Shown: positions 2,681 to 61,159 of the stretch, one piece after another
Position numbering within the stretch: position 1 is the stretch's first letter
How the letters are laid out: each line of letters begins with the position of its first letter
Assembly: GCA_038087875.1 (NCBI GenBank)
Contig: JAXLNO010000674.1
Coordinates: forward strand, 124,001-188,000
Source: Malacoraja senta
Taxonomy: Eukaryota
Length of the DNA stretch: 64,000 nucleotides
Direction of reading: 5' to 3'
Program-made: the position numbers and the translations under genes
Notes under the pieces: model-generated
Databases searched by the model: none
What the model was told of the DNA's origin: nothing
The model's input: the letters and a program-made list of their open reading frames with translations, nothing else

Positions 2681-2753
2681 ATGCGAGAGGTTGTGCGCGG
2701 AATGATTCTGTTCATCTTGTTGAGTTTCTTCCGCGTACAAGGGGCTCAAGCAG
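2681..2753 (+). CDS. Exon 1, signal peptide MREVVRGMILFILLSFFRVQGAQA(G)
   Basis: First in-frame ATG after a TGA at 2654, with a second ATG at 2702. It encodes a hydrophobic core and an A-X-A cleavage site, and ends at the strong donor CAG|GTAAGT in phase 1. Not in the ORF track. Confidence 0.75.
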
Positions 2754-3049
2754 GTAAGTTAATGATTATCATTTTATTCGCTACTGGCTAAAAGCGTCTT
2801 GGCTTTATCTCAATCTTGACTGGAGGCGACTGAGTTTAAACAAGCGCGCAATACACATTCAGTCTGATTCATGGTTCATGCGGACGTTAAAAGGGTTTAA
2901 TCTCCACTGTTTCAGTACAATCCAGACTGGAATTTCTGCATTGATTTGCACAATGCCCCGTTTCCTTTGTGGAAGAAGGAACTACAGATATTGCTTTAAA
3001 CTGATTTTAACTCGTGTAAAACAAACAGGAGCGAGGCACTCACTAGGGT

Positions 3050-3950
3050 TTCCTCGCTGCTCCTCTCTTGCTCTCACTTCCCCCCACATTCGTAACAAGG
3101 ACAGAGGGGGACTTGTCCTCACCTTCCACCCCATCAGCCGTCGCACAGCATATGATCCTCCATCATTTTTGCCAACTCCAACAGGATCCCAATACTGGCC
3201 ACATCTTCCCATCTCCACCTCTTTCTGCTTTCCGTGGAGACCGTTCCCTCCGAAATTCCCTGGTCAACTCGTCCTTTTCCACCCAAACCACCCCCTCCCC
3301 AGGTACTTTCCCCTGCAACTGCAGGAGATGCAACACGTGTCCCTTTTCCTCCCCTCTCGACTCCATCCAAGGACCCAAACAGTCTTTCCAGGTGAGGCAG
3401 AGGTTCACTTGCACCTCCTCCAACCTCATCTACTGTATCCGCAGTTGCAGGTGGCAACTTCTCTACATCAGCGAGGCCAAGCACAGGCTCGGCAATCATT
3501 TCACTGAACTACTTCGCTCTGTCCATCTTAACCTACCTGATCTCCTGGTTGCTCAGCACTTCAACTTCCCCTCCCATTTCCAATCTGACCTTTCTGTCCT
3601 GGGCCTCCTCCATGGTCAGAGTGAGGCCCAGTGCAAATTGGAGGAACAGCACCTCATATTTTGATTGGGTAGTTTACACCCCAGCTGTATGAACATTGAC
3701 TTCTCTAACTTTAAATAGCCCTTGCGTTCCCTCTCTATCCCCTCCACTTCCCAGTTCTCCCACTATTCTTAGTGTCTTCAACTACATTCTATCTTTGTCC
3801 CGTCAACTCCCCTGAAATCAGTCTGAAGAAGGGTCTCGACCCGATAGGTCGCCCATTCCTTTTCTCCAGAGATGCTGCCTGCCTGCTGAGTTACTCCCGC
3901 ATTGTGTGTCTACCTTTGAGTTAAACCAGCATCTGCAGTTCTTTCTTACA
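3050..3950 (+). mobile_element. Penelope-like element, GIY-YIG endonuclease end plus pseudo-LTR
   Basis: ORF 3068..3664 contains CNCRRCNTC and SSNLIYCI...LYISE...RLGNHFTEL...VAQHFN...EEQHLIF, followed by the ctgaagaagggtctcgaccc repeat. Confidence 0.88.
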
Positions 3951-4113
3951 CAAAGGGCATTGTTTGACAGGTTCATGTTTATGGCCAAATGTGGGAAGAG
4001 AGTGAGGCACTAGTACAATGCGAAATCAATAAACGATTAGCACACAATGTGGTTTTGTTATTGATTGAGTGACAACTCTTAGCTCCAAACGTGCGGTCGT
4101 CACGTTTACATGG

Positions 4114-5050
4114 TTTATTAATGATTTGGATAAGGGGATTGAATGTTTTGTGTCCAAGTTTGCAGATGATGCTAAAATAGGTGGAGGGGCAGGCAGTGTA
4201 GAGGAAGCAAGGACTTTGCAGAAGGACTTGTTCGGGTTAGGATGGTGGGCAGAGAAGTGGCAGATGAAATTCAGTGTAGAAAAGTGTGGGAGACATGCAT
4301 TTGGTAATCAGAATAAAGGCGTAGAATATTTTACAAATGGAGGGATAATCCAGAAATCGGAGGCACACAGTGACATGGGAGTGTTGGTGCAGGACTCCCA
4401 AAAAGGTTAATTTGAAAATTGAATCGGTAGTCAGGAAGGTGATTTATATCAAGAGGACTGGAATACAAAAACAGAAATGTCATTCTGAGGCTTCAAAAGC
4501 GCTGGTCAGGCCACGTTTGGAGTACAGTGTGCAAATTTGGGCCCCCTATCTGAGGAAGGATGTGCTGGCTCTGGTTCAGAGGTTGTTTACAAGAATAATT
4601 CCATGAATGAGTGGGTTAGCATATGATGATAGTTTGACAGCACTGGGCCTCTACTCGCTGGAGGTAAGAAGGTTGAAGGGGGAACCTCAATGAAACTTAC
4701 AGAATAATGAAAGGCATAGATTAAGTGGATGTGGAAAGGATGTTTCTACTGGTGGGTGAGTCTAGGACCAGAGGTCATAGCCTCAGAATTAAAGGGTGCT
4801 CTTTTAGAAAGGAGGTCAGGAGGAATTTCTTTAGTCAGAGGGTAGTTAATCTGTGGAACTCATTGCCACAGAGGGCTGTGGAGGCCAAGTTGGTGGATAT
4901 TTTTAAGGCAGAGATCGACAAATTCTTGATTAGAACGGGTTATCATGGGGAGAAGGCAGGAAAATGGGATTAGGAGGCACAGATCAGCCATAATGGAATG
5001 GTGGAGTAGACTCGATGGGCCGAATGGCCTAATTCTACTCCTGTAATGTG
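4114..5050 (+). mobile_element. Degenerate CR1 LINE 3' part
   Basis: Fragmented ORFs FINDLD..SKFADD, LVRPRLEYSVQIW and TRGHSL..FFSQRVVNLWNSLP, followed by a CR1 3' UTR. Confidence 0.9.
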
Positions 5051-6589
5051 AACGTGTACAGGTTAGGAGAGTGGGCAGAGAAGTGGCAGATGAAATCCAG
5101 TATAGCAAAGTGTGGAGACATGCATTTTGGTAATAAGAATAAAGGCGTAGATTATTTTACAAATGGAGAGAGAATCCAGAAATCAGAGGCACACAGTGAC
5201 ATGGGAGTGCTGGTGCAGGACTCTCAAAAGGTTAATTTGCAAATTGAATCGGTAGTCAGGAAGGTGATTTATATCAAGAGGACTGGAATACAAAAACAGA
5301 AAATGCCGCCCGATTTGTAAGAGTGTCAAAGGTCACAGGGAGATGACAGGAGAACGGCACTGAGAGGGAACGATAGGTCAGCCATGATTAAATTGTGGAG
5401 TAAACTCAATGGGCTGAACAACCTAATTCTGCACCTTTGACTTATGAAATGATCTTTTTATTTCTCCCCAGACTGGTGTGTCTGGAACCAAAATTCACAG
5501 TTTAAAAATAAGGGTTCAGACATTCTTATGGCACCAAAACATGGTGACACCTGTGTGATGACTAGGTTAGGTCTGCTATATGATTTTACCGTTGTATGCG
5601 AAACGAAGCATTTCACTGTACCTAGGTGCATGACAATAAAATATCATTGAATTCAGTGCAGTAATGAGATGAAATCTTTTCACCCAGAGGGTAATTAGTC
5701 TTTCAAATTCTCTGTCCAAGAAGGCTGTGGGCTTTAAGTCAATCAGATGCTTGAGGCAGGGATAGGAATATGCTTGGATACAAAAGGAATCCAGAATTCG
5801 GAAAAATGGTGGTCTGCTAGAGGATCGGTTATGATCTTATAAAATATAGAGATTGGGAACAAAGGATGAATGGCAACATTTTGCTTATGTCAGGTTTGAT
5901 CCCACTCCACAAGAGAGTCCAGAAGGAAAGATAGTATAGAATGTTCAATGTGCTGACTACAAAACAATGACATTCATGTAGCAGACCTGTAAGACAATAC
6001 AAATAGATAACATACTAAAAATTCAGTTAATTGATAATCCCAATACATGTGCAAATACACCGCAAATGCTTAGTTTAACCAAAGACAGTCCATAGGTCTA
6101 CAGGGTCCGACTCGACACATTACCTATCCATTCTCACCAGCGATGCTGCCTGATCTGCTGAGTTACTCCAACACTTTGTCTTTATTTTGTTCATTAATCA
6201 TACCTGAGTTTAGTGTAGTTCAGAGTTCAATATACGGGAAGATTTTAATGATCACATTCCAGCACGCATCTCCAGAGCCAAACAAAACAATGACATTCTC
6301 CTTTGATGGTAATAATCTAATTTGGTGAAAGGGGAAACAGGCTTAGATATAAAGAATAACATTTATAGCAGTTCCAATGTAGGAAAATGCTTCCATGAGA
6401 TTCGTAAGAATATTATTCTGTAACATTTTACTTCAAGCAGTATAATGGCATGACATGACAATTAGCAAAATAAAAATTTAAGGTGCATCTTAAAGGAAGA
6501 ATAAGAGGAAGGGATATTTAGAGAGCAATTCTATGACTTAGGCCTGCTCTTCAGATGAAATACTTAAATTTGTGAATAATCAGGAAGTT

Positions 6590-6800
6590 ATACTGCCCGG
6601 TTCATCGTGGGTTCTGACCTCACCACCATCGAAGGGATCCACACGAGACGCTGCCTCAAAAAGGAAGGCAACATCATCTCCCTGGCCACGCTTTCATTAC
6701 CTCCCACCATGGGGTGGAAAGTATAGGTGTTTGAAAACCATGACCTCCAGGTTCAAGAATAGCTTCTTCCCAACAACTATCATTCACGTGAACAATACAC
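6590..6800 (+). mobile_element. Rex1/Babar LINE 3' fragment
   Basis: Reads RCLKK...KYRCLKTMTSRFKNSFFPTTI, matching the C-terminus of the copy at 21.2-22.2 kb. Confidence 0.7.
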
Positions 6801-9589
6801 AACGCTAACCTCAACTGTGAAATTGTATGGACTGTATGCATGCCGAGGAGGAGCTGCATAGGAAGGAGCTGCAGATGCTGGTTTAAACCGAAGATAGACA
6901 CAAAAAGCTGGAGTAACTCAGCGGGTCCGACAGCGACTCTGGAGAAAAGGAATAGGTAGCGTTTCAGGTCGAGACCATTCTTCAGACTGATAGTCAGGGG
7001 AAAGCGAAACGAGAGATACAGGGGGTGATATAGAGAGATATAAGAACAAATTATTGAAAGATTTGCTTTGAATGAAAGAGCTGTTGGTCTTACATATTTA
7101 AATACTACAATGATCAGAGTTTAAAATCTGAATATTATTCAATCAGAAATATGATGGGTGAATGGGATGGAGCAAGTTAGCACAATGATGACAAAGTCTG
7201 AAGAAGGGCCTCAATCTGAAACATCACCCATTCCTTCTCCCTAGAAATGCTGGCTGACCCACTGAGTTACTCCAGCATTTTGTGTATATGGCTAAGTGCT
7301 GGAGTAACTCAGCTGGTCAGGCAGCATCTCCGGAGAACGTGGCTAGATGACATTTAGGGTAAACACCCTTCCCCAGAGTGAAGAAGGGGTCTTGACCCAA
7401 AACATCTATCCATCATCACATATCCATGATCTCCAGGGATGCTGCCGGACCCACTAAGGTGCTCCAGCACTTTGTGTCTCTTTGTGAACCAACATTTGTA
7501 GTTCCTTGTTTCTACAGTATAAATTGACTATCATTTGTAGGTAAGTGATAGAATCTGGAGAGAGATGATGGGAATTTGCAGAGAATAAGAATGGGTTGGT
7601 CAAGAGCAAGGGTTTAATTGTCATCTGTACTGGCAATGGAATAATGAAATTCTTATACACATATTAAATATACAACAATCAATGGTAAAATAAATTAATA
7701 TTAGTTATACTAGGTAACCAGACCATAACAGTGGAAAAACAAAACGTCCTTACTGCAACCAAAATAAAGTCTATCGCAGATCAGAGTTGTTGAGGTAAGG
7801 TTGTGGTTCGTGTTGTGCAGTGTTTAAAAGCCTGCTGCTCATGAGAAAAAAAGCTGCTCTTAAATCTGGAGCTAACAGTTCTCAGGCTCTCTAACCTCAG
7901 AGGCAGTAGATGGGTTCAACGGTATTTTATTTGTGGCATGTACTGAGGTACAGTGAAATTCATTTTTTGTATACAGTTTAGTACAGGTATCACTATATAT
8001 AAGCCCTTAGATACGTCTTAGATAAGCATCTCAGATACAGTACAAGTGTATAGCAGTAGTACGCTGAGACAGTATACAGTGTCGCCAGTTTTTGGTGCCA
8101 TTTTCACGTCCCAGTTGTTGTAAGTGAGGGTTCTTGGCCTGACCATGTGGCCCATTGTCCTGGTGTGTTGCAGGGTTGATCTGTCCAATCGAAGCTGTGG
8201 TGTCCTCTACTGCTGCAGGGCGCAACTGGTCCATGTGCCTGGCCTCATGGAGCAGCGCCTGGAACAGCCAAGCCCCAGGTTGCTGTAGGGCCTCCAGCAC
8301 CCACTCCACTGTTGAGGCAGTCCATTCCCTCCCGCAGCCTGTCTGCCTATAAGCCATCCATCTGACTCCTTCCACTCTGGCCGGGCGAGCTGAGTCTTCC
8401 AGGTGGGTCCTCCATCCTTGGTCCACAGCGAGCAAGAACTCGGTCCGTGATGGATGGGCCAGATCTTCCAGGTGAATTCCTGGTCCCAGGGTGGCTGGCC
8501 CTGAGAGTATGGCCAGGGTGGTGTGGGTCTCTGATGATATTAGCTGTCTTTCTGAGGCAGCACCTCCTGTAGATCCATGGTGGGGTGGAATGGTATGGAA
8601 TTAGTGCTTCATGGTCAGTGGACTGTCGGCTGATGGTTCTGTTTGTGTGTCTCTGTGACTATATGTGTGGAGAATGCTTCGAAAGAGTAGGTGAAGAGGC
8701 ATTCTAAATGATGGGATGCACATATCATTGTAAACGGGACCCTCAAAGTATTGATCTGTAAAATGCTGAATCTGCATTTTATTGCAGGGGACTAAAGTTT
8801 AATGGTAGCCAATCCACATAAACACTTGTTCTTGTCTATGGAGAGTTTTGCAGACTGCTCCAATTACAATAAATTAATATATAAAGGGAGTGGGATACAA
8901 GAAGGTACATTCCTTTTATCCATAGATGCTGCCTGTTCCACTGCGTTACTCCAGCATTTTGTCTCTATCTTTGGTGTAAGCCAGCATCTGCAGTGCCTTC
9001 CTACACAGACACAAGAAGGATCCCAACAATGGGTTCTGTTTGTATGGAGTTGATACGTTCTCCCTGTGACCGCTCGGGTTTCCTCTGGGTGCTCAGAGGG
9101 CGGTGGAGGCCGGTTATCTGGATACTTTCAAGAGAGAGCGAGATGGGCCTCTTAAAGATAGCGGAATCAGGGGATATGACAAGAAGGCAGGAACGGGGTA
9201 CTGATTGGGGATGATCAGCCATGATCACATTGAATGGCGGTGCTGGCTCAAAGGGCCAAATGGCCTACTCCTGCACCTATTGTCTATTCTCTATTGTCTA
9301 TTGTTTCGTCCCACGTTCCAAAGACGTGTGGGTTTGTAGCTTTATTGGCCGCTGTAAATTGCCCTGAGTGTGTTGGATGTGAAACAGGGAAAACATAGAA
9401 CTAGTGTATGGGTGATTGATGGTCAGTGCAGACTCAGTGGGCAGAAAGGCCTGTTTCCATGCTGAATCTGCTAAAAAAGATTGGTGAGCATGATACCCGA
9501 ATTCAAACGTCACAGAGAAACCAACACATTTTAGTTTGTACAGACAAGAACACCCAAGAATGTTTGTATTCAAAGAGACCAACAAAGTA

Positions 9590-12405: not shown

Positions 12406-13018
12406 AATCTTATACTTAGAACATTGTAGAAGTAGGGCATTCAGCACAGGGAGGCTGTCCCATTGGGGGGGACGAGAACAAATGAGGTACTGTGGGGATG
12501 GGGGCGCCACCCAGAATGAAGGGGGAACTGGTGGGGATGGGGTCTGCTGCCATGTGCGGCAACAGGCAGTGTATAGGACTGTTCGGTAATTTGTCTGCGC
12601 CAACACATGACGACATTTTTGTACTGCCTAGGTTCAGTTTAGTTTATTGTCACATGTACCGAGGTACAGTGAAAAGCTTTTGTTGCTTACTAACCAGTCA
12701 GTAGAAGACAATACATGATTACAATCAATGCATTTGCAATGTAGAGACACATGATAAAGGAATAATGTTTAGTGTAAGGTGAAGCCAGCAAAGTCCGGTC
12801 AAGGATAGACCGAGGTTGTGGAAAACAAAGCATTTCACTATACCCAGATACCTTGGGTACATGTGACAATAGAGTATCATTCAATCATTCTTTCATTCAT
12901 CAGTCCTATTACTCCCAATTTATTTTCCATATAACACAGGCACCCATGGCCGCCAATGCTCCTTTGATTTTCTTTGCCATTTACGTGTGTTGTTCTGGCT
13001 AATGTGTTTTGTGAAGTA

Positions 13019-13330
13019 CAGCACAGTGGTGCAATGGTAGAGAGTTGCTGCCTCATAGCGCCAGAGACCCAGGTTCAATCCTGACTTCAGGTCTGTCTAT
13101 GTGGAGTTTGCACATTTTCACTGTGACCGAGTGGGTTTCCTCCAGGTGTTCCGGTTTCCTCCCACAACCCAAAGGCATGCAGGTTTGTAGGTTAATTGGC
13201 CTATGTAAATTTCCCCTAGTGTATAAAGAGTGGACGAGAAAGTGGAATAACTAGAGTGAATGGGAGATCAATGGTCAGCATGGACTCAGTGGGCCGAAGG
13301 GCCTGTTTCTGCTATAACTCTAAACTAACC
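13019..13330 (+). mobile_element. V-SINE (HE1-like), near full length
   Basis: tRNA-like head with A box (tggtgcaatgg) and B box (ggttcaatcc), the V-domain, and a CR1-type tail ending ctaaactaa. Confidence 0.88.
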
Positions 13331-30142: not shown

Positions 30143-30402
30143 GGCCTCACACACTGATCTATTACTACACCCTGAACCACGGGAGTACTCATCTACCAGA
30201 ATATAGTGTATGGGTGTTCTGGACGGTTGTGAGATACAGTATTATGACCAAAACATGGTCATTACAGTTCCAAGACAGAAATGGATGGCGGCTGCATTTG
30301 ACAGGAATTACTGGGTAACCAATACGGTCTCTGAAACTGGTTTCCATGGAATCATCAAAGGGCAAGTCGATGAATGGATGTGGAGGCAGAACGAAACAGC
30401 AA
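30143..30402 (+). CDS. Exon 2, MHC class I alpha1 domain (1-nt deletion)
   Basis: Acceptor ttttctttgtgtctAG and donor A|GTTAGT. It reads GPHTLIYYYTLNHGSTHLPEYSV, then shifts frame to MGVLDGCEIQYYD...RNYWVTN...WRQNETA. The length is 260 nt, and 261 would keep the frame. As written, a TAA occurs at 30316-30318. Confidence 0.92.
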
Positions 30403-39024: not shown

Positions 39025-40019
39025 TTATAATGGGGGATTTAATACTGTATCCAGCACGGCATCACCAAACCCTCTGAGATCTTTAATCTCCTTGTGGTAA
39101 TACTTGTGAAACATCTGTTCACTTGCCCATCCTGCGGCCGCGAGAATAAGGTCTATTGCACGTCTGAATCCCTGGCCGCTGATGTTGATGCCGCCCTGGT
39201 GGAATGAGATTTAAATATATCAGTATCAATACCTGAATATCTCAACACCTGTTTCAACCATCGTGAAATTGTTTGTGTTGATACTTTCTTATGAGGCTTT
39301 TTATGACTAATAAAAAATGCCAATTCGGCGCCTCTTAAAACTTTTGTTGTTTCTATGTAACATTTCACATATGTTACTACACACAGTCGTGAATCTGTAG
39401 GATATGCTAAAAATTCCAACTTGCATCCTGTGGACCCAGGTCTACTTTGCTTCAGTAAATCATAGACATAGAATGTCACGGCATTTTGCCCTACTTTCAT
39501 TCTATCAATTCTGAGTTTCTGTAATGTTTGAACTCTCTGCGCTGAAACTAATGCCATGAGCATAACCAATTTCATGGTAATTTTGGATAATGACAGGGTT
39601 TCAACTGGATTCCAATTCCTTAGGAACATCAGTACATCTTTTACATTCCAAATTTCTGTATACCTGGGTCTGGGAGGATTAGAGTTAAAAATTCCTTTCA
39701 TAAACCTACAGACCCAAGGATGTGCTCCAATTGGAGTTTGTTCTGATTCACTGCTTAAATATGCAGAGAGTGCACTTCGTGCAGTATTAATTGCACTATA
39801 ACTTAATTTCAATTCATAGTGTAGAGTTGAAAGTAACTCTATTACATCTGAAATTTCTACTGTGTTATATGCAATATGTTTCCCTGAACAAAACACCTCC
39901 CATTTCTTTATATAGGAGATGTACTGCTTCTGGGTACTATTCCTCCAGGCTGCTGTCATAACATCCACCGTACGGTCCCATAATCCTTTTCCAAGATATG
40001 GCCTTCTCAGAATCTGCAA
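39025..40019 (-). pseudogene. DIRS tyrosine recombinase (YR), one frameshift near 39158
   Basis: ORF 39153..40019 contains SAQRVQTL and FKSHSTRAASTS. Restoring 1 nt continues it as IDLILAAAGWASEQMFHKYYHK, completing the R-H-R-(W)-Y catalytic set, with a stop at 39025-39027. Confidence 0.9.
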
Positions 40020-41900
40020 ATCAAGAAACCAATACGATTATGTAAAGGATGTGATTCATTAGTCACAGGGTGTACAAGCAGTTTAATCTGCTTTGGAATA
40101 ACCATAAGGGTTTTTTTGATTATTTTTAACACCAGTGGGTACCATACCTGTGTAGGCCAATCTGGTACTACCAAAATCCCTGAGGCTGAATCTTGTTTAA
40201 TTTTCTGTATGCATTTGTGGATTAAACAAAATGGTGGGAAAGCATACAGAAACATACCACCCCAATGTAGCGAGAAAGCATCCACCACTACTGCTCCAGG
40301 ATCAGGTTCCCATGACACATACTTAGTCAACTGGTGGTTCAATCTTGATGCAAACAGATCAATTTCTGGCATTCCAAATTGTGTGATAATTTGTGTGAAT
40401 ATTTTCCGATTTAACATCCATTCTGTATTATCATTAAATTTACGTGATCTTTTGTCTGCAATTGTATTAATTTTTACCTGGTAAATATATTGCTGACAGC
40501 CAAATTTTCTGGCAATACCCCAGGTCCAAATTTCATTTGCCAATTTATCACATGATTCTGATTTTATACCACCCATGTGATTTATGTATGCTACAGCTGT
40601 AGTATTGTCAACCTGTACCTGAACATGCACATTTCCCATATCAGTGCAATAAGCTCCAAGGCCGTAAAATGTGCCTAATAGCTCTAGGTAATTGATTCCC
40701 AGATTTTCCAGCAAAGGTACTTCATTCATATTCCACCTACCTCCACAGCTGGAAATCATGTTAGTAGCGCCCCAACTCAGCGCACTTACATCAGTCTGTA
40801 GAGTGACGGAAGGTGTTTCTACCAGAACTTTTCTGGAAGCATTAGAAACATTGTTAATCCACCATTCTATTTCTGTAATGGATTGAATTGTTAATTTCAT
40901 GGGCCTATCAAAATGCCCTCTATTCATTTTTAACGCTTGTACCTTAGCTCTCTGTAAACATTGATAATGCAATGGTCCAAACGTGACCGCTGGAAACCCT
41001 GCAATTAATTTGCCTAGCAAGCTTGCCACTTCTCTAATTGAAGGTGTGTCCTCGTTAATGGGTTTTATGCAACCTTCAATTAACTGCAGCTTTTTATCTT
41101 TTGGCAAAGTGATTACCATGTGTTCGGAGTTAATATTTTTGCTTGGTAACAATTTAGGTTTTTGTAGGTGAATAATGAAACCTAATTTCTCAAAATGTAT
41201 TTGACTCTGGATACTGACAATTTTGAAGCAGCCAAAGTGTCCCCTATAATGAGGATATCATCTAAATAAGCCATTAATACATGGCCCTCAGCACTAAACA
41301 GAGCTAAAATTTGGTTTGAGCAATTTAGTGAATAATCTTGGTGCTGAAATCAGACCATTGGGCAATGCTTTAAATTGCCATAACTGACTCATCCATCTAA
41401 ATTTCAAATATCTTTGATCATTACCATGCATTGCCACAGAATAATATGCATTTTGCAGATCTATGCTTGCCTTGTAGCAATTCTTTGTGACTAGCTAAAT
41501 GGCATTAGTAAATGTTTCCATTTTGAAATGTTTCTATTGTACATAAAGGTTAAGATTTGTCAGATCGGAAATGATTCTACGTCCACCATCCCTTTTCTAG
41601 GAGAATATTCCGAGGAGAATATTTGACACAAACTGATGGTGTTGTTCTCCTGACATTTATATCATCCTTTTCTGCATAAAGTTTTTCAATTCTCCTTTGA
41701 TCAACCCATTCTCTTCCTTTGAGACAAATCCGTGACCAGTTTGAATTATGCTGAATTGGAGGATCCAAACATGGAGAGAACTCAATTTTGAATCCTACAA
41801 TGCTACATAGAATAAATGAATCATTTGTTATTGATTGCCATTCTTTTAGGAAGAATCGTATCCTTCCCCCTATTTGTGAGTGTGAAACATTTGTTGTGTT
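40007..41900 (-). pseudogene. DIRS pol: RT (YLDD at 41257-41268), RNase H and Dam-like methyltransferase; stops and frameshifts in RT
   Basis: RT motifs IDLQNAY and ALPNGLISAPRLFTK. RNase H motifs LQTDVS, INYLEL and VQVDNTTAVAYIN. Methyltransferase motifs IDLFAS (about 40346-40363) and YAFPPF (about 40229-40246). Confidence 0.9.
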
Positions 41901-43371
41901 TCTTACCAGACCAAGCTCCCTAACCTTTGCCACCGGCAGTTGTTGTCCGCTTCTAGTAGGCACATTGTACCCTCCACGTATCCTCGGTGCAGCACGTCAA
42001 CGTGTATACGAGAATGATAGGATTGTTCCTTCTCCAGCACCACATTTCGCCGGTAGGGGTACTGCCTTCTCACCGCTCTGCTCAGCATAGGTGATCCTTT
42101 AGTTTCTTTGCTAGATTTTCTCCAAAACAGATTTAGGCATTTGTATATTGCATGGTTTGCAGAGCCTGCATACTTAGGATGAATATTTGGTCTTATAGCA
42201 TTTTTATGAATACAATTTATTTCAAAGTGCGCACTACACATGAGTGCTAAGGCATTTTGTTGTGAATACGATATATAACCTTCATCCAAACCACTGACCC
42301 CAGAAATTTCAGCATTGTGTAATTTCAATTCTTGTGAGCGTAAACCACTGCTCAAATTTCCCATATCAAGTTTATTCACTGCTGTAACTGCTACAATTTC
42401 CCGGGTCTCATATTTTTTGATAGTCTCATCCATGGTTAATTCCTGGGCTGATGGGAGAGTAGATAATTTATAGTCATAGCTATTTCCTCTCTCAATGGTT
42501 CCCCTGTTACTCTGGGAACAGCAAAGTTTTGTGCCAGCCTTGGAACATTTTTGGCTCTGATAATGGGCTCTGGTCCTCATTTAAATCATCATCGAAATCT
42601 AGATATTCATTTTTATGTTGGGTAATTTCTGGCTCCCCTGTTTCAGGTAAGTCTCTGCCAGATTCCCCCTGCGCGGGCTCTCTTGTAGGCCCACGGACAG
42701 GCAGCCCTGCTTCAGGTGCTGCTGGCGCTGGCTCAATTCTAGGCCAACGCTTCATTATTTTTACTCTTTATATTTGTCGGTGCTGGCACATTTATCATTG
42801 CACGTTTGTGCTGCCTTTTGTTCAGGCATTTCTAGTACTGGCTCTCCAATAGGCCAACACATAACTTGCCTTTTTTCTGACATTTTTGGGCACTGGCTCT
42901 CCTGTAGGCCAACCTCTTTAATGTTTCTGCACAGGCACTGATGGCTCTCCTGTAGGCCACCCTTGTGCCTGTTCCAAGGCACCTCCTGTGCTATACTTCA
43001 TTGGCCAACACCGACTTAAATCCTCCTGTGGGGGTTCTTTACAAATCATCTGCCCCATAAGGAGTTATAAAGTTTTTTGACCCTTGCAGTGTAATACTCT
43101 TTCCTGCCTGAGGAGGGCATACCTCCGGGTCTGACTCATCCGAGTCTACAGGTCGGGCCGATTTTTTTATCTTTTTTTTCTCAGCCTTGCGCCCCGCCGC
43201 CGGCGGTTTAACAGCACATTCGACCACAAGGGGAGTTAATGGCTTCGCTGCCACTGACTCCCCTGACTGATGCCCGCTACCCTTAGGATCTGGGGTTTTA
43301 CTACGGTGCGTCCCTGGCCGCCTCTCCTTCCCATTTCTCCATAATAAACTTGTGTGGTGCTCCACCAACAA
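41900..43371 (-). pseudogene. DIRS gag-like ORF1, fragmented
   Basis: ORF fragments 43039..43371, 42507..42755 and 41903..42580 occupy the ORF1 position between the 5' ITR and RT. The call is positional, with no strong motif. Confidence 0.55.
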
Positions 43372-44874: not shown

Positions 44875-46734
44875 AACCATATAACCATAACAGCACGGAA
44901 ACAGGCCATCTCGGCCCTTCAAGGCCGTGACGAACATTTTTAAAAAATGTTTTTAAAAATTAAAAATAAATACTTCCCCCTAGTCCCATCTACCTGCACT
45001 CAGACCATAACCCTCCATTCCTTTCCCGTCCATATACCCATCCAATCTATTTTTAAAGGATAACATCGAACCTGCCTCCACCACTTCCACTGGAAGCTCA
45101 TTCCACACAGCTACCACTCTCTGAGTAAAGAAGTTCCCCCTAATGTTCCCCCTAAACTTCTGTCCCTTAATTCTCAAGTCATGTCCCCTTGTTTGAATCT
45201 TCCCTACTCTCAATGGGAAAAGCTTATCCACGTCCACTCTGTCTAACCCGCTCATAATTTTAAAGACCTCTATCAAGTCCCCTCTTAACCTTCTGCGCTC
45301 CAAAGAATAAAGACCTAACTTGTTCAACCTTTCTCTGTAACTTTGCTGAAACCCAGGCAACATTCTAGTAAATCTCCTCTGTACTCTCTCTATTTTGTTG
45401 ATATCCTTCCTATAATTTGGCGACCAAAATTGTACTCCATACTCCAGAATTGGCCTCACCAATGCCTTGTACAATTTTAACATTACATCCCAACTTCTTT
45501 ATTCAATGCTCTGATTTATAAAGGCCAGCACACCAAAAGCTTTCTTTACCACCCTATCTACATGAGATTCCACCTTCAGGGAACTATGCACAGTTATTCC
45601 TAGATCCCTCTGTTCAACTGCATTCCTCAATTCGCTACCATTTACCGTGTACGTCCTATTTTGATTTGTCCTGCCGAGATGTAGCACCTCACATTTGTCA
45701 GCATTAAACTCCATCTGCCATCTTTCAGCCCACTCTTCCAAATGGCCTAAATCTCTCTGTTGACTTTGAAAATCTACTTCATTATCCACAACATCACCTA
45801 TCTTAGTATCATCTGCATACTTACTAATCCAATTTTCCACACCATCATCCAGATCATTGATGTACATGACAAACAACAGTGGACCCAACACAGACCCCTG
45901 AGGCACCCCACTAGTCACCGGCCTCCAACCTGACAAACAGCCATCCACCATTACTCTCTGGCATCTCCCATTCAGCCACTGTTGAATCCATCTTGCTACT
46001 CCACCATTAATACCCAACAATTGAATCTTCTTAACCAACCTTCCATGAGGAACCTTGTCAAAGGCCTTACTGAAGTCCATATAGACAACATCCACTGCTT
46101 TACCCTCATCAATTTCCCTAGTAACCTCTTTGAAAAATTCAAGAAGATTAGTCAAGCATGACCTTCCAGGCATAAATCCATGTTGACTGTTCCTAATCAG
46201 ACCCTGCTTATCCAGATGCTTATATATATTATCTTTAAGTATCCTTTCCATTAATTTGCCCACCACTGACGTCAAACTAACAGGTCTATAATTGCTAGGT
46301 TTACTCTTCGAACCCTTTTTAAACAACGGAACAACATGCGCAGTACGCCAATCCTCCGGCACTATTCCCGTTTCTAATGACATTTGAAATATTTCTGTCA
46401 TAGCCCCTGCTATTTCTACACTAACTTCCCTCAATGTCCTAGGGAATATCCTGTCAGGACCTGGAGACTTATCCGTTTTCATATTTTTAAAAGTGTCCGC
46501 ACCTCCTCTTCTTTGAATCTCACAGTTTCCATTGCTACTCTGCTTGTTTCCCTCACCTCACATAATTCCATATCCTTCTCCTTCATGAATACCGAAGAAA
46601 AGAAATTGTTCAATATCTCCCCCATCTCTTTTGGCTCTGCAGATAGCTGTCCACTCTGACTCTCTAATGGACCAATTTTATTCCTTGTTATCCTTTTGCT
46701 ATTAATATAGCTGTAGAAACCCTTTGGATTTACT
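44875..46734 (-). mobile_element. CR1 LINE (family B), 5'-truncated, inserted in the Buster transposase ORF
   Basis: ORFs 45499..46482 and 44980..45483 are near-identical to the 10.8-12.1 kb copy. The host ORF rejoins as GEAL|IK at a duplicated ttat. Confidence 0.95.
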
Positions 46735-49060: not shown

Positions 49061-49139
49061 GGATATAGAAGGGAATATGTGCTTGGAGTTTGTGGATATA
49101 GGCGAGGTTTGGTTTCACCAAGGAAGACATGTAGAATAG

Positions 49140-50500: not shown

Positions 50501-50692
50501 CAATAATATAGTCTCTACAGTTGCACGGAAGGCCAAATATTCAGGCTGTAGTTCAGTGACAAGTAGAGTTCTGCACGGATCTGTGCTGTGACCCTTGCTA
50601 CTTGTGACATATATAAATGACTTGGACCCTGGTGTTGAGAAATTACCCAGTCATAACAATTAATCAAATAATGATTTTTATTTTTATTTCAG

Positions 50693-50966
50693 ATTATCAC
50701 TACATTCAAGGACAGTTTGGTTGTGAGGTGAACGATCACAGTCCCACTGTAGGGATATTGAAGTTGGCTTTTGATGGAAGATATGCATTTAGTTTTGATA
50801 AGGACAAATTAAAGTGGACGGTGCATGATCCAATAGCTGAGCCCTTCAAAGGGAAATGGGACAAGAATGAAAAAATGAACCGTTATTTCAAGAGCTTGTT
50901 AGAACATGACTGTGGATCTATGGCTTACATACTATGCAATTGGAAAGACATACCTGACCAGAAATG
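50693..50966 (+). CDS. Exon 3, MHC class I alpha2 domain (2-nt deletion)
   Basis: Acceptor tttttatttcAG and donor G|GTGCGT. It reads YHYIQGQFGCEV...AFDG...KWTVHDPIAEPFKGKWD...LLEHDC. Restoring 2 nt in TGTG gives VDLWLTYYAIGKTYLTRN, which aligns without gaps to CVEWLRRYLENGKETLQR, and a 276-nt exon, the canonical class I alpha2 length. Confidence 0.93.
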
Positions 50967-51279
50967 GTGCGTTCAGAACAAAGGATGTTGTTTTGTGATG
51001 GTAGGCAATGAGTAATATTTCACTCTGAGGCAATGAGTAATATTATCTCTGACCCAATCATGACAGAGGGAAAGGTCATTCGGCCCATTGATTCTATGCT
51101 AGTTTTCCATGCAATGTCGACAAACTGTTCCACAGCTCTCTCTCACAACTTGCACTCAGCTCCCTCGGATTCTCCTTGCATTCAGCTCCTCGACGGATAA
51201 TTTGCAATATCCAACTAACTCACTGGCTCGTCTTTGGTATATGGGACAAAACTGGAGCACATGGAGGAAGCCAACTGAG

Positions 51280-53210: not shown

Positions 53211-53519
53211 AAAGTGTAATTGATGTCTTTCATATCAGTTAACCATGGATTTTCTTGACCACAGTTGACAGCCCCTAATGGGATTGCATGTCTATCACAC
53301 ATCTCAAAAGAGCACAGCGTTAAGCTTCGAAAGGGCAAAATTTACACGAGATGTGCAGGTCAAGTGTTTTTTTGCACAGAGAGAGCTTGATACCTAGAAT
53401 GCGCTACCAGGAGTGGTGGTAGAGGATGACATGATAATGGTGCTTAAGAAAGTTTTGGACAGGCTTGTGAATGTGCAGGGAATACAAGGATATGGATCAC
53501 ATGCAGGCATTGGAGATTA

Positions 53520-53810
53520 GTTTTGGTTTAGTTTAGAGATAGAGTATGGAAACAGGAACTTTGGGCCACTGAGTCCACACTGACCAGCAATTGTCCATTC
53601 ACTATTTCTGTCCTACAAGCTAGGGACAATTTACAGAAGCCAATTAACCTGCATGTCTTTTGTATTTGGGAGGAAACCGGAGCCCCCAGAGAAAACCCAC
53701 AGGGTGACAGAGAGAACGTACAAACTCCGTCCAGACAGCACTCTAGTCAGGATCGAACCCGGGTCTCTAATGCTGTAAGACAGCCACTCTATCACTGTGC
53801 CTCTGTGTTG
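53520..53810 (-). mobile_element. V-SINE (HE1-like); further copies at about 30478-30620, 31280-31490, 55500-55790, 61420-61720, 61800-62090, 62270-62500 and 63008-63290
   Basis: Same head, V-domain and tail as the other copies. Confidence 0.85.
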
Positions 53811-56800
53811 CCTCAGTTTAACTTGGTATCCTGTTCCACATGGACATTGCAGGCTGAAAGTCCTGTTCTTGTACTGTTCTATGTTCTATATATTCTCATT
53901 GGACAGGGCAGGGATATGTTTTCCACTCCTCCAGCCTCCATGTTGAATACTTCCTCCCAGTTTAAATCTGATTCAATTAGTCAATCCATTTCTCGCTCCG
54001 CTCCTGCCCTGATCCCCATTCTATATTTTGAAGTAGTCATTCCCTTTTTCGCTCCCTGGTCTGTCTACTATCCCCACAACTTTCCTCTACTTTCCTGTCT
54101 TGGTGCAAGCAACATCTATCCATTTACCACTTTCCATAGACGCAGGCAGTTCTTCAATGTGAAACAGCGTGAAACACTTGCACTTCCAGTCAAATCTACT
54201 GCATTTAGTTTTCATTACGTAATCTTCCACATTGCATCAATGAAACAAATAGAATGGCTGCTTTCTGGAGAACTCGCATTCAATCCATGGGACTTTCTAA
54301 GATTCCTAATTCCTGCCACTTTAATTCTCCATTCAACACCCACCATGATCCATCCATCTGTACCTCTTACACTAGGGTAACAAGGGTGAAAGTAACCTTG
54401 AGGACCAACAACTCAGCTTTTGTCTGGACATGTTGCAGCCTTTCACACTCAATTCCACATTCAACAAGTTGCATTCCCTGTCGATAAAATAACTGGTCCT
54501 TTCAACTGTTAAGTTGAAGACAGAAAGAACAGATGCAAGAAGTATGAAGCAGGATCCCAAGCTGAAACATTACATAACCATGTCTTCCAGATGCTGCCTG
54601 AGCCACTGAGTTACACCTGCACGTTTTTTTTTTTTTTTTAAATTACAGTTAAGTTATCCACCTGCAAAATCATGACAGCCTGACCTACTTGAGTAGTGCA
54701 GTATGTGCTGCATTTTATATAACTCTGTTTAGTTTCATGCATGCAGAGATGCAGTGAAATGGTTTGGATGGAACAGCAGATGCTGGACACCCCGTCCATT
54801 CTCTCCAGAGATGCTGCCTGTCCCGCTGAGTTACTCCAGATTTTTGTGTCTATCTGCAGTGAAATGGTTGTTTTGCATTCTCTCCAGTCAAGTCATACTG
54901 TACATAAGTACAATTCGTCCTCTTCTGGAACAGCACGCAGAGATCCACCACATTCCAGGACTGTCTTGCAGCTTTCAAGTCTCTGAGAAGTCTGATTTTG
55001 CCCTAAGGAAATACCCAATTTCTAATTTTCCCATGTTAAGGCCCAGTGTCATAACAGCACTGGATTGATGAAGTAGAGGTGCCTGCCTCAGTTAAAGTTT
55101 TTCTGTTTCAAGATTGTGACCAAACCCTCGTCACTGGAACTGTGCCGCAGTGCCACCCATTACGTATCAGTCCCAATTATCTTTCAACATGCTGGAATCA
55201 CTTGTTTTTTATCCTTTTTAGACTTTTTTCATGAATTGTTCAGCATAAACAGTTATGCTACAACAAAGTTAAGCGCAGCTACCACTTAGTTCCAGAGACG
55301 TAACAACACAAGAGATAGTGTTGGAAGAATGATCAAACTCACACATAGTGGTTATTAGTAACTTTGCAGAGGAAACACAAGGTGCTTTCTTCTCAGCATG
55401 CTTACTACCAGTCTACCAGAGAGAGAGCTGTCTAACAAGCCTGTGGGCGGAGCCACAGTATGAGTGACACTAATCTACAGATAGGCACAGGAATAAGTTT
55501 CGGTTTATTATTGTCACGTTTAGTTTCGAGGTACAGCATGGAAATAGGCCTTTTGGCCCACTGAACCTGTGCTGACTAACGACCACCCAAATATTAGTTC
55601 TATCCTACACACTATGGACAATTTACAGAAGCCAAAAAACTTACAAACCTGCACGTCTTTGAATGTGACGGAACGGTAGCACCCGGAGATAACTCACATG
55701 GTCACAGAGAGAATATATGAACTCTATATAGACAGCACCCATTGTCAGGATTGAACTTTGGTCTGTGGTACTGTCAGGCAGCAACTTTCCAGGTACAGTT
55801 CCATGATATCAAATTGGATGAGATAACAACATACATATATATGATCAAGTCAACTCAAGTACTGAAGGTAGAGCAAAGGGGAAGGTACAGAGTGTGGCAT
55901 ATAGTTCTCAGCAATGTAGTACACCAGTTCCATTAGATAAGGGTTTTGACACAAAACGTGACACATTCCTTCTCTCCAGAGATGCTGCCTGACCCGTTGA
56001 GTTACTCTAGCATTTTGTGTCTATCTGCGGTTTAAACCAGCATCTACAGTTCCTTCCTGTATAGTTCCATAAACAAAGTCCACTGTCTGTAATGGGGTAG
56101 TGGTCAATTGGACAGTACCCTAGCTTATGGAACGATCATTCAGAAGCCTGATTTTCTCCTCAGTTATCAAGTTTCCGAGTAAGCCATTTGGTCCTCTAAC
56201 CTGCCCACCATTCAATATGACCATGGCTGACGTTCCTCAGGCATCAACTCCTGTTCGGTGCCAGTTCCTCATTGCACTCAATTCTCCAATCTTTCAAAAG
56301 TTTAACTACCGCCATATTAAATGCTTCCAATGATTTTGTCTTCACAAATCTCTGGCGCCAGAGAATGACCACACTCTGCAAAAAGAGATTTTGTAAACAA
56401 ATGACTGGTCTCTTTTATCTCTTATTGAAGAGGAGTGAAAATACTGCCAATTTTAAGCTTGTCCCCTCCCCAATTGGCCCTCATTTCGTAACTTGTATTA
56501 GTTTATTATTGTCACGTGAACCGAGATATAGTCAAAAGTTTTTCTGTGTGTTATCCAATCAGATCATACTTCACATGTGCAATCAAGCCATCCACAAGTA
56601 GATCAGTGCAAAGAGCAAAAATATTCAGAGTGCATAATATCGGGTTACAATATCATAGCATTACAGTTGCAGAGAAAGTGCAGATCAAAAAGAGTTGCAA
56701 GGATCACAATGAGATTGGTTGGAAGATCAGGGCAACATCTTATCTTACATGAGAATCATTCAGTAGTCCAATAACAGCGGGGAAGAAGCTGTTCCTGAAT

Positions 56801-57014
56801 GTAATGGTACGTACTTCCAAACTTTCTTGTGTACTGTCTTAACAGGGAGGGTACGATCCCTTTTAAACCACGTGTTTGGTTGATGGTGACGAAAGAGGCA
56901 ACATGGGGCAGATGTGGACAGTAACTTGGTGGTTGTAGTAGACTGAAGAATATTTTGTGATGGGTGACTGCACGTTTTACTGAAGGTGAAAATAACCATC
57001 TTACTGGCTTGTAG

Positions 57015-57281
57015 TTTCCCCTGAGGTCACTCTCGCTGCCCGCCCTGATGATCATTCAGTCCTGTACTGCACTGTGTTTGGATTTTACCCACCGGCCATC
57101 AATGTCAGCTGGTTGCAGAATGGTCAACATGTCTCTGTGACGAAATCTTCTGGGGTCGTACCCAACAACGGTGGAACATATCATCTAAGGTCTGTCCTTG
57201 AGTATGATCCATATGATTGGAAACAGTATTCCTGTCATGTCGATCACAGCAGCCTGCCCGGTGGGAAGACCATCATCTGGG
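57015..57281 (+). CDS. Exon 4, MHC class I alpha3 (Ig C1-set) domain, intact
   Basis: 267 nt, open. It reads VSPEVTL...LYCTVFGFYPPAINVSWLQNG...VPNNGGTYHLRSVL...YSCHVDHSSLPGGKTIIW, with the C-W-C Ig motifs and donor G|GTAAGA. Confidence 0.95.
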
Positions 57282-57356
57282 GTAAGAACATTAAATATTC
57301 TTTCATAGATAATCATTATCTTCTGTTGTTTCCATTTTAATCATTGTGACTACATC

Positions 57357-58395
57357 TAGGTATGTTACAAAACTTACCTTCAGCGGCGCTGCAGTTCTGT
57401 CACTGCCCGTGTGCGTGACTTTGGCGCCTTTGAGAGGGGGGCGGGTTTAAAATGCGATATTTCGGCAGCCTGTTCTAAACGATCTTGAACAGGCTAAATA
57501 GTTGATGAAGAAAAATGGCTTAGACTGCCGTTTTATTAAGTTTATTAATATTAGGGCTTTATAATTTAATTGGTGGAGTAAAATTAAAATCATCTTCAAG
57601 TGCCGTAAACGCAGACAACGGGGACGGATTTCACGCACGGGACAAGGCAAGGTACACCATTTATTTTTTCATATAAACTTGCTTCTTAGGATGCCTTTAA
57701 TAAAAATTTCAAGTTGCGAAAATGTGATTATTTAAATATACCAACCGGCAGTATTTTTCCTGCCGATATTGGGGTTTAATTCAGTGCAACCGCAGCGTTC
57801 CAAACCAGCGTGTTCCACAAAAACCCACTTGCAAGATGATTTAAATGGCCATTAATTTTACAGGAATTAAACACTAAATTCCTTCCATTTGGCCTATAAA
57901 TTAATGACAATGAGATTTAAAAATAATGTTATATTGTGAATTGTTGTGTGAATGTTATTTGGACACTTAGGCTTTTTAAAAATGTTAACTTTTTCTTAAG
58001 AAATGGATAGATATTTAGATCTAGTAATTGAATTTTGTAATTAGCTACAATTGGGTAACTAACTAATTATATGCTTTAATTTCAGGTCATCCAAGTAAGA
58101 TTGTTTCATATTTGTTTCAGAATGCTTCAATCTATAATAACTGAAAATGTCATTAAGTTCTCTTAATTTTTAAGAAAGTTATGGGCTTTTGACTGTCCTT
58201 GATCACAGCTTTTGTGTTAAGTCAATGGAAAAGCAATAGGGAACAATATGCTAATTTCCGAGTATGAAAATGGCCAAATTTTTTAATACAGAATATATGA
58301 AAGTGGATTAGGTGTCAAATTAAACTTCTTTTTATGCTTTATCTGATGGGATAAATTGCAGACTTGATTTTTAAAATCTCAAAATTTTGACATTG
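57357..58395. mobile_element. Putative non-autonomous DNA transposon just downstream of the alpha3 exon
   Basis: Flanked by a direct repeat, CTACATC, at 57350-57356 and 58396-58402. Ends are weakly inverted (taggtatgttacaaaa / ttttgacattgcta). There is a CpG-rich left end and an AT-rich body with no ORF. Confidence 0.4.
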
Positions 58396-58689
58396 CTACA
58401 TCCCATGTAGTACATCCCACATTCCAAGATGGTTAAACTTTCTTTGTTTAGTGGTGTTGCTCTAAGTAATCACGTAATCAGCACCCACTCTCCACATGAG
58501 CAGAAGACTTTGTCAACAGAAAATATATTAAAAGTAAGTAAATAAATAACTAATATACAAGGAAGGAGTATTTGGGATGCTCAGTGGTGGAACTGATATC
58601 CATGAAAGGTATGTTTAAATATAAAATTAATCTTTCCTCATGATGTGATTAACAGCAAGGCACTGGGGGAGTACATGCCCCAATCTGAA

Positions 58690-59390
58690 TCAATAGTCTG
58701 AAGTGGAAATGATTGAGAGCTTCGTGTTCCTTGGCATGAATATATCCAATATTCGGTCATGGACTGGCCACATAGCCAAGGGGGCACACCAACACCTCTA
58801 CTTCCTCCGGAGACTGAGGATATTCGTCATGTCTCTGGTGACTCCAGCAAACATCTATAGATGCTGCTAGAGAAAGCATGTTGTTGGGTTGCATCACATC
58901 TTGATTTGGGAACTGCACTGCCCAAGACTGCAAGAATATACAAAGAGTTAAAGATCATCACACAGCCCAGACTTCCCACTGTTGACCCAATCTACACCAG
59001 GTTGCCTTGGAAAACAAGACTTATCACACCTTTCTCACATTCCTCCTTCCTGCTCCCATCAGGCAATAGGTACTGAAGGTTGAAAATAAGCACTGCCAGA
59101 CTCAGGAACACCCCCTTTCCACCTGTTAACAGGCTTCGGAAGCGTCCTTCCATAATGTAGGTTTAATGCCCGATTCACCTCAACCTCATTGAACATTGAA
59201 CATTGTCCATGGAACTGATGTGCTACAATGCTGAGAACTATATTCTGTACTCTGTATCCTCCTCTTTGCTCTATCTATTGTTTTTGAGTTTTTTATTTAT
59301 CTATAGTATTATCTAATTTGTTTGGATAGCATACAAAACAAACCTTTGCACTGTATCTTGAAACTTCTGACATTAATAAAACTAAACCTA
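58690..59390 (+). mobile_element. Degenerate Rex1/Babar LINE 3' fragment
   Basis: Homologous to 21.2-21.9 kb (ttcgtgttccttggc, caacacctctacttcctccggagactgagg, ctcccatcaggcaataggtac). Confidence 0.7.
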
Positions 59391-61051
59391 ATGAAGTAAG
59401 TTCCCTGACGCAAGTTACAGATTCAGCAACGAAAAATATAACTGCCTGACAAACAGCGATCGTAGTAGTTTGATTCCAGGTATGCTGCACTAACCTACAC
59501 AAATGTTCACTTTTGAAGATTCCCTCGAACAATGCACAAATAAGGAATCTGATGTTTCACTCTGAAGACTGTTGACATACTCCAGAACTTAATTTTCAAC
59601 CTATCTATGTATCATCAGCAATCTAGGCTACAGCGCCACCAGTCCCTTCATCTGCTCTTAATACTAACGATAAGTAGTTCACTTTCTTGCATTGATTCCC
59701 ATCCTGCAGTTGCAGTTTCCCAACCTAAACACTCCTTTAAGACTCTGCTTGCTCTTAATTGTTTTTCCATTCATGCTAATTATTACCCCCAATGTCATAA
59801 GCCATGTGCCTTTGCATCACTTGATCAGATATCTTATGAAAATCCAGATATTCTGGCGACATCTGGTGGTCAGGCCACTTATTGCTAGAACCCTCGTCAG
59901 GGGAGCTGGGACTATCACGTGACAGGGTTTTGGTGGGAGTTGGTGACGAGTGTTAATATCCAGTCAACTGGTGTGCCCGATTACAACGGCAAGAACTTTG
60001 CTCAAGTCCTTACTAAACGCGAGTGTACCAAAACTGTATTTCTTTAAAAAAAACATTGATTTGTTCACGACGCTTGGATCTCTACAATATATTGTATTTC
60101 TTTTGTTTCTCATTCCAATTTTGTTACCTATTCTGCTTTTCCATCATTTTGTTTTTGAATTTTAGGCTGTGCACACCTGCAAACTACTGCTGCTCAAATA
60201 TACATTGTCTACGGGTTCCTGTTGCATTTTCAAAGAATTCTAATCAATTTCTCAAACAAGGTTTGAAGAAGGGTCCGTAAACGAAATGTCACCTGTCCAT
60301 GTGTAGGGAGAAATTGCAAATACTGGTTTACACCGAAGATGGACACAAAATGCTGGAATAACTCAGCTGGTCAGCCAGCATCTCTGGAGAAAAGGAATAG
60401 GTGATGAATCCATGTTCGCCAGAGATGCTGCCTGTTTCGCTGAGTTATTGCAGCATTTTGTGCCTATCATGTATATTCTTTCCACTGACTGGTTAGCACG
60501 TAACAAAAGCTTTTCTCTGTACCTCAGTACATGTGACAATAAACTAAACTAAAGCTTTTGTGTAAATCAGTATCTGCATCTCTTTCTTTCTACAATTGTC
60601 CTGTTAATGCCCTGATAATGCACTTTATTGTTTTGTTATTACTTAAATGTTCTGCCATTATTGAAAGGAATCCAGCATTTTCCCCAAAACAAATGTTAGT
60701 TTATATAGGGTTAAAGCTTTCTGCTTTCAATTCACCTTCTTTCATGAATTAAGTTGTGGCTGCGATGGTGCCATAGATCATAGAGTTGTACAGAACATAT
60801 ATTGTCCCTTTGCCATGCTGCAGAACTCCGTGATTCAAAACACCATATCATCTTATATACCTTGAAAAGCGCCAAAGATAGACACAAAATGCTGGAGTAA
60901 CTCAGCGGTCAGGTAACATCTCTGGAGAAAAGGAATAGGTGGCATTTCGGGTCGAGACCCTTCTTTACTCTGAAGTCTTCAGACAGTGCCCATCTATTTA
61001 GCTGCACAGCTTAACAATTGATTTGTAAAATTATGCATTCTTATTTTACAG

Positions 61052-61159
61052 AAGGAAATAAGAAGAAAGACAGGCACATAGGCCTTATTGCCGTGTGTGT
61101 GCTGATATTGCTGGCTATTGTCTTGGCAGTAATTGTTTGGTGGAGAAAAAAGAGGAGAG
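61052..61159 (+). CDS. Exon 5, connecting peptide, transmembrane helix and stop-transfer, intact
   Basis: Acceptor ttattttacAG, 108 nt open, reading EGNKKKDRHIGLIAVCVLILLAIVLAVIVWWRKKRR, with donor G|GTAAGA. Not in the ORF track. Confidence 0.9.

Follow-up and report, generated by a model that had tools for sequence, protein, structure and literature searches.

Gene structure at the locus

Across positions 2681-61159 of the window, the 64,000-nucleotide stretch of Malacoraja senta DNA analysed here, lies a five-exon class I gene on the plus strand. Its exon borders, as read from the window sequence, are also those used by the spliced transcript L005, which comes from an intact relative, and AG and GT flank all five exons. 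All exon junctions are of phase 1, the last base of each exon being the first of a codon, and each exon encodes one domain. The layout is as follows.

538-1919, strand not assigned: repeat insertion of 1.4 kb, private to the window copy and lying about 760 bp before the start codon; the corresponding place in the Amblyraja and Leucoraja loci lacks it
2681-2753, plus strand: exon 1, start codon and leader peptide; 73 nt, open, donor CAG/gtaagt; alignable with exon 1 of L001, L002 and L006, all intact loci
30143-30402, plus strand: exon 2 (alpha1); 260 nt against 261 nt in intact relatives, length 2 modulo 3, both splice sites unchanged
50693-50966, plus strand: exon 3 (alpha2); 274 nt against 276 nt in intact relatives, length 1 modulo 3
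57015-57281, plus strand: exon 4 (alpha3, a C1-set Ig domain); 267 nt, open, with private replacements
61052-61159, plus strand: exon 5, connecting peptide, transmembrane helix and start of the tail; 108 nt, open, donor GAG/gtaaga

The introns are 4-27 kb long and rich in transposons. A self-tblastn search with all exon pieces on both strands, including the introns of 20-27 kb, found no spare copies of any exon in the window. In Amblyraja the last coding exon, which encodes the tail, lies 6.8 kb after exon 5, and the matching place falls about 1.7 kb past the window end; intact members of the lineage carry a tyrosine-based sorting tail (DYQNI, DYQTI or YNxV). The gene has the build of a class I heavy chain, namely an alpha1/alpha2 platform followed by a C1-set domain and a transmembrane segment, encoded by phase-1 exons of one domain each. 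The alpha2 piece matches Pfam MHC_I (1.5e-9), alpha3 matches Pfam C1-set (2.3e-18), and exon 5 translates into a hydrophobic stretch followed by basic residues. The C-terminal piece of alpha1 has no Pfam match, although it does match class I chains in the PDB, 9ch4_A above all (5.5e-28).

Relatives and lineage placement

The same chain, 9ch4_A, is the top PDB match for each domain piece (2.4e-27 for alpha2), and for alpha1 and alpha2 it leads the next chain by at least 18 orders of magnitude. The top protein matches, from skates, sawfish, rays and sharks, form one conserved group. Leucoraja XP_055521884 shares 94% identity with the alpha2 piece, which also has close relatives in sawshark. Intact proteins of 334-341 aa were found in Amblyraja, Leucoraja and Rhinoraja (341 aa in these three skates) and in many sharks and rays. 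These nearest relatives are members of the CD1-like lineage and not classical UAA or other class Ib genes. Sequence similarity thus places the locus in the elasmobranch CD1-like non-classical class I lineage (UGA/UFA), for which PDB 9CH4 provides the structure; a literature search for that PDB code returned unrelated papers only. The lineage has been described as MHC-linked, CD1-like and lipid-binding (PMC12562908, PMC10751288), its lipid-binding hydrophobic groove being given solely as a personal communication in PMC12562908, and published summaries regard it as single- or low-copy in skates. Rhinoraja has many near-identical copies.

Five intact loci align collinearly with the window over exons and introns alike, and coding identity between the window gene and the skate genes is 92-94%. 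Both Amblyraja radiata XP_032898133 and Leucoraja erinacea LOC129716032 share the five-exon layout and the collinear introns. The Leucoraja contig with LOC129716032 (L006) was considered as a possible counterpart of the window itself and turned out to be another collinear copy, about 91% identical. A tree built from 3216 noncoding sites has the form (W,(A,(L,L)),(R,R)) with 100% support, where W is the window and A, L and R are the Amblyraja, Leucoraja and Rhinoraja loci. The window copy split off from the lineage of the intact Amblyraja and Leucoraja genes before these two skates diverged, which makes it either an old paralogue or the orthologue carried by a third skate. Two frameshifts, a predicted weakening of the exon 3 donor and neutral-looking drift set it apart from the intact members of the lineage.

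Lesions and reading frames

When the window was aligned with the intact loci of three skates, the two gaps fell in the groove exons, each inside the interval named in the original prediction (30200-30215 and 50905-50920).

30207-30212, plus strand: alpha1 frameshift site, gap at about 30210; ancestral GTCGTG has become GT-ATG, a 1-nt deletion with an adjacent G>A change; no homopolymer
30316-30318, plus strand: first premature stop, TAA, met in the shifted frame once exon 2 is included
50908-50914, plus strand: alpha2 frameshift site, gap at about 50911; one TG unit lost from ancestral TGTGTG; no homopolymer
50962-50972, plus strand: exon 3 donor, AAG/gtgagt in five intact loci and ATG/gtgcgt in the window; two private changes

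The uninterrupted alpha1-alpha2 frame that marks a functional class I gene is therefore broken: alpha1 is 1 nt short and alpha2 2 nt short of the lengths in the five intact loci, as had been noticed from the window alone. The alpha2 lesion falls on the codons for the conserved Cys-Val in the alpha2 helix. Among the donors and acceptors, only the exon 3 donor has private changes; both depart from the consensus and are predicted to weaken it.

Translation of the possible splice products bore out what had been said of the reading frames. With all exons joined, the frame is ended by the TAA at 30316-30318. Skipping exon 2 alone (exons 1, 3, 4 and 5) leads to a TGA four codons into exon 4. Joining exons 1, 4 and 5, all of them open and of phase 1, gives an open leader-Ig-transmembrane frame of 149 aa. 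Two ways of rescuing the full-length frame were considered and rejected. A cryptic acceptor AG at 30205-30206, as read from the sequence, leaves alpha1 out of frame. Nor can the two deletions compensate for each other: although together they remove 3 nt, the stretch between them is full of stops.

Substitution pattern

On the window branch the coding changes amount to 15 nonsynonymous and 4 synonymous (omega 1.02); of the former, one or two fall in codons that are hypervariable or homoplasic. The intact branches pooled have 47 and 37 (omega 0.35). This contrast is only marginally significant (binomial p = 0.036, one-sided Fisher p = 0.053), resting as it does on 19 coding changes on the window branch. 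The comparison of domains that had been proposed as a check revealed no sparing of alpha3: alpha3 plus transmembrane segment have 4 nonsynonymous to 1 synonymous change and alpha1 plus alpha2 have 9 to 2 (Fisher p = 1). Alpha3 carries three private replacements, E>V (57137-57139), D/N>G (57170-57172) and G>W (57218-57220). Of the positions that are invariant across 23 homologues from sharks and rays, only two are privately changed in the window (E245V and G272W), and both are in this domain. Judged by these substitutions, alpha3 appears to have decayed as fast as the two frameshifted groove exons.

Divergence along the window branch is about 2% in coding DNA, less than the 3.4% in introns, which implies that the gene was under constraint for part of the branch and leaves the date of its death loose. 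In the noncoding alignment of 3.5 kb, 14 indels accompany 118 substitutions on the window branch, and 16 accompany 127 on the stem of Amblyraja plus Leucoraja. The coding DNA of the window, with 2 indels per 19 substitutions, has the same ratio as the noncoding DNA. The chance of both indels falling in groove exons is 0.30, and that of exons 1, 4 and 5 escaping indels is 0.17-0.55.

Interpretation

The lesions, the donor changes and the substitution pattern point to the window gene being, very probably, an unprocessed pseudogene of the CD1-like class I lineage that has kept its introns. Constraint would have been lost, after which a 1-nt deletion in alpha1 and a 2-nt slippage deletion in alpha2 would have accrued, together with two changes weakening the alpha2 donor and replacements spread evenly over all domains. 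Any transcript would be expected to include exon 2, because its splice sites are intact; translation would then terminate at the TAA at 30316, and the outcome would be either degradation of the transcript or a fragment of 82 aa. The open state of exons 1, 4 and 5 may reflect no more than the short time that damage has had to reach them. Of the earlier description of the locus as a young pseudogene, then, the second word stands, and the first is at odds with an omega of about 1 on its own branch.

Three other explanations have to be weighed against this one. The gene might be functional in the species, the window representing a haplotype with recent, unfixed disabling indels. The start codon, exons 1, 4 and 5 and all AG/GT sites are intact, as would be expected of such a null allele, and the lower coding divergence likewise bespeaks constraint for part of the branch. 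However, two independent indels, two donor-site changes, an omega of about 1 and radical replacements at alpha3 positions invariant in the family together point to a long neutral period and not a fresh null allele, so that we consider this explanation unlikely. Marginally less probable still is an intact gene whose missing bases are consensus indel errors, as had also been proposed. Both lesions are indeed short deletions within an otherwise good gene, and 3.5 kb of introns gives only a loose upper bound on excess indels. Yet neither site is a homopolymer, a substitution adjoins the alpha1 deletion, and the window has no excess of indels: its indel-to-substitution ratio equals that of a branch common to independent assemblies, which makes assembly error unlikely. 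Error would also leave unexplained the omega of about 1, the replacement of invariant residues and the apparently weakened donor.

The leading one of the original suggestions was that the locus has been kept, after loss of the ligand groove, as a single-Ig membrane protein. Both groove exons would be skipped and a leader-alpha3-transmembrane product retained by selection; a transcribed locus of this kind might yield a protein with its own function, for example as a beta2-microglobulin partner or a decoy. The 149-aa frame fits such a product, and the changes in the exon 3 donor would favour the skipping of that exon. The exon 2 splice sites, however, are unchanged, and inclusion of this exon would bring in the stop. 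Selection on the Ig domain should have left stronger constraint on alpha3 and the transmembrane segment than on the groove exons, but they fare no better, and two of the three alpha3 replacements hit invariant positions. The open frame itself follows from the phase-1 exon layout common to class I genes, and the escape of exons 1, 4 and 5 from indels is unremarkable by chance. No proteins of 63-200 aa with the window alpha3 were found in a collection of 5.8 billion proteins, a blank that is weak evidence, and a homologue search with the frameshifted alpha2 frame gave no candidates for other contigs with the same alpha2 deletion, a blank that is uninformative. A 147-aa protein from a Leucoraja cluster (P0131), considered as a possible Ig-only product, is a GPR139-like fragment. 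We regard both the retention of a groove-less product and its production from a transcribed locus as highly improbable.

Comparison with mammalian class I genes

An unprocessed pseudogene at this locus would have well-known counterparts in mammals. HLA-H, -J, -K and -L are full-length, intron-bearing class I pseudogenes in which small indels or stops have abolished function, and they result from the birth-and-death turnover of a multigene family. The window copy resembles them in being disabled by small lesions; it differs in belonging to another vertebrate class and another class I lineage and in having transposon-filled introns of 4-27 kb. Domain-skipping isoforms are likewise familiar: HLA-G2, -G3 and -G4 and MR1B arise from intact genes and retain alpha1. 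What they share with the window copy is the phase-1 layout, which permits in-frame skipping of whole domains; the intact gene of origin and the retained alpha1 set them apart from it. We know of no class I product that consists of alpha3 alone. The open frame left by exon skipping in a class I pseudogene is a by-product of gene structure and does not signal a new product.

Taken alone, the locus is a minor addition, one more dead copy in the birth-and-death record of shark and ray CD1-like class I genes. The accompanying comparative data, namely the collinear loci in three skates, the omega of about 0.35 in the intact copies and the near-identical copies of Rhinoraja, may aid the mapping of this lineage in skates.

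A frameshifted gene of the CD1-like class I lineage

The window sequence (0 N), which has the appearance of transposon-rich vertebrate DNA, contains an MHC class I heavy-chain gene of five exons, all ending in phase 1 (one base into the codon).

Exons of the class I gene
2681-2753, +, exon 1, leader, 73 nt
30143-30402, +, exon 2, alpha1, 260 nt
50693-50966, +, exon 3, alpha2, 274 nt
57015-57281, +, exon 4, alpha3, 267 nt
61052-61159, +, exon 5, connecting peptide and TM, 108 nt

The exon borders are exactly those of the spliced transcript L005 from an intact relative, and a tail exon is expected about 1.7 kb past the window end. Pfam assigns the alpha2 piece to MHC_I and alpha3 to C1-set; a search for second copies of the exons elsewhere in the 64-kb window found none. 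The groove exons measure 261 and 276 nt in all five intact loci, so that alpha1 is indeed 1 nt and alpha2 2 nt short, as originally noted, with the frame shifting near 30210 and near 50911. The splicing outcomes given there were also reproduced: the phase-1 exons 1, 4 and 5 join into an open frame of 149 aa, and skipping exon 2 alone leads to a TGA four codons inside exon 4. With all exons joined, the frame closes at a TAA (30316-30318).

In an exhaustive profile search, the alpha2 piece shared 94% identity with an intact protein of Leucoraja erinacea and 72-76% with the sawshark proteins that came next. Also in this cluster are an intact protein of 341 aa from Amblyraja radiata and three skate transcript products, all full-length, taken from public RNA-seq assemblies. 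The Amblyraja protein, used as a query, retrieved one conserved group from skates, sawfish, rays and many sharks, in which Rhinoraja longicauda has at least ten near-identical copies. The best solved relative of every window domain piece is PDB 9ch4_A (5.5e-28, 2.4e-27 and 1.4e-31), and its lead over other class I chains is large for alpha1 and alpha2. According to reviews, sharks and rays have two class Ib lineages, UFA and UGA, that are linked to the MHC, resemble CD1 and bind lipids, and for which a crystal structure exists (PMC12562908; PMC10751288). The window gene is very probably an unprocessed pseudogene from such a CD1-like class I lineage (UFA or UGA), one already known and with a solved structure.

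Collinearity with the Amblyraja gene (L001), two Leucoraja loci (L002, L006) and two Rhinoraja loci (L003, L004) extends through the introns in all five cases. Maximum likelihood on an alignment of 3216 noncoding sites gave the tree (window,(Amblyraja,(Leucoraja,Leucoraja)),(Rhinoraja,Rhinoraja)), every node having 100% support. Noncoding distances are 9.1% between the window and Amblyraja or Leucoraja, 2.5% between Amblyraja and Leucoraja, and 12-12.6% between the window and Rhinoraja. The window copy therefore branched off the lineage of the Amblyraja and Leucoraja genes before the two genera diverged; it represents either a third skate's orthologue or an old paralogue. The two Leucoraja loci (contigs JAMYXN010000384 and JAMYXN010000161) are themselves collinear, differ by 1.4% in noncoding sequence and may represent either divergent haplotigs or a recent duplication. 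The existence of three distinct full-length transcript products (P0128-P0130) suggests expression from more than one allele or copy.

Nature of the lesions and probable loss of constraint

In alpha1, GTCGTG or its variants in the intact loci became GT-ATG, with one base lost and the adjoining G changed to A. In alpha2, GACTGTGTGGAT became GAC--TGTGGAT; here one TG unit is gone from a short TGTGTG repeat, affecting a conserved Cys-Val of the alpha2 helix. Assembly indel errors in an otherwise intact gene had been proposed as one explanation. We regard this as unlikely, since neither site is a homopolymer and indels are not over-represented on the window branch: an alignment of 3.5 kb of noncoding DNA, with Rhinoraja used to polarise the changes, gives it 118 substitutions and 14 indel events, versus 127 and 16 on the Amblyraja+Leucoraja stem, whose changes are present in independent assemblies. 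The coding exons of the window branch (19 substitutions, 2 indels) give the same ratio as noncoding DNA. The simple reading is that both lesions are real mutations. That they mark a null allele is likewise very unlikely, as it fits poorly with the drift accumulated on this branch.

Over 762 nonsynonymous and 207 synonymous sites, polarised codons gave N:S of 15:4 (omega 1.02) on the window branch versus 47:37 (omega 0.35) on the pooled intact branches. The contrast (binomial p 0.036 against omega 0.35; Fisher one-sided p 0.053) is suggestive, not decisive, as substitution counts are small and 1-2 of the 15 nonsynonymous changes fall at hypervariable or homoplasic codons. Together with the two frameshifts, it supports the pseudogene reading. 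Divergence on the window branch is about 2% in coding sequence and 3.4% in introns; if omega was 0.35 earlier, the gene would have drifted neutrally for roughly one third of the branch, with a wide error.

The remaining proposal, that the locus is kept as a single-Ig membrane protein made by splicing leader to alpha3 to TM, found no support and is extremely improbable. Exons 1, 4 and 5 are, as claimed, free of stops and indels, and all AG/GT dinucleotides are retained. Yet alpha3+TM (4N:1S) is no more constrained than alpha1+alpha2 (9N:2S). Moreover, an alignment with 23 intact shark and ray homologues revealed exactly two private window changes at fully invariant positions, both radical and both in alpha3.

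Private changes at invariant positions
57137-57139, alpha3, E>V
57218-57220, alpha3, G>W, in the turn preceding the second Ig cysteine

Alpha3 carries a third change as well, in the conserved xGTY motif, where D/N is replaced by G. These alpha3 changes run opposite to what a retained Ig-only product would predict. Only the exon 3 donor has private splice-site changes (AAG|gtgagt in the five intact loci versus ATG|gtgcgt, weaker at two positions); those of exon 2 are unaltered, and this exon with its stop should therefore be included on splicing. Two random indels would both land in exons 2 and 3 with a probability of 0.30, and exons 1, 4 and 5 would stay free of indels with a probability of 0.17 under neutrality along the entire branch or 0.55 under neutrality along one third of it. 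The open leader-alpha3-TM frame is a consequence of the phase-1 layout that class I genes share. On these grounds the pattern first noted needs no special explanation.

Repeats, neighbouring gene and copy number

Repeat and transposon features in the window
538-1919, 1.4-kb repeat insertion, about 760 bp upstream of the start codon
33006-34373, +, transposon open frame, intronic
39156-42580, -, transposon open frame, intronic
45499-46482, -, transposon open frame, intronic

The upstream repeat is missing from the corresponding position in Amblyraja and Leucoraja, but other parts of those loci contain copies with 96-98% identity to it, which points to a young family that remains active in skates. 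Its insertion here may have interfered with the promoter. The intronic frames include two reverse-transcriptase frames and a tyrosine-recombinase (phage-integrase-like) frame adjoining another long frame, an arrangement resembling DIRS-type elements.

In exon 1 of the two Rhinoraja loci, CTG followed by TAA stands where the skate gene has its first ATG (window 2681-2701 region), so translation would have to begin at the second Met, codon 8 of the window/Amblyraja/Leucoraja frame. UFA and UGA are single- or low-copy in published summaries, whereas Rhinoraja longicauda has at least ten near-identical, intact-looking copies on one chromosome (P0132, P0146-P0154), at least two of them 8 Mb apart (L003 at 39.66 Mb and L004 at 31.60 Mb of CM130181.1). 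In the Rhinoraja loci and in L006 (Leucoraja LOC129716032), the class I gene is followed directly downstream by a GPR139-like 7TM gene.

GPR139-like gene in the Rhinoraja loci
L003, 51575-52359
L004, 48598-51201

NCBI models in Leucoraja join the two genes into chimeric isoforms, such as the 663-aa P0120 (MHC_I + C1-set + 7tm_1). The class I gene and its GPR139-like neighbour may duplicate as a single unit.
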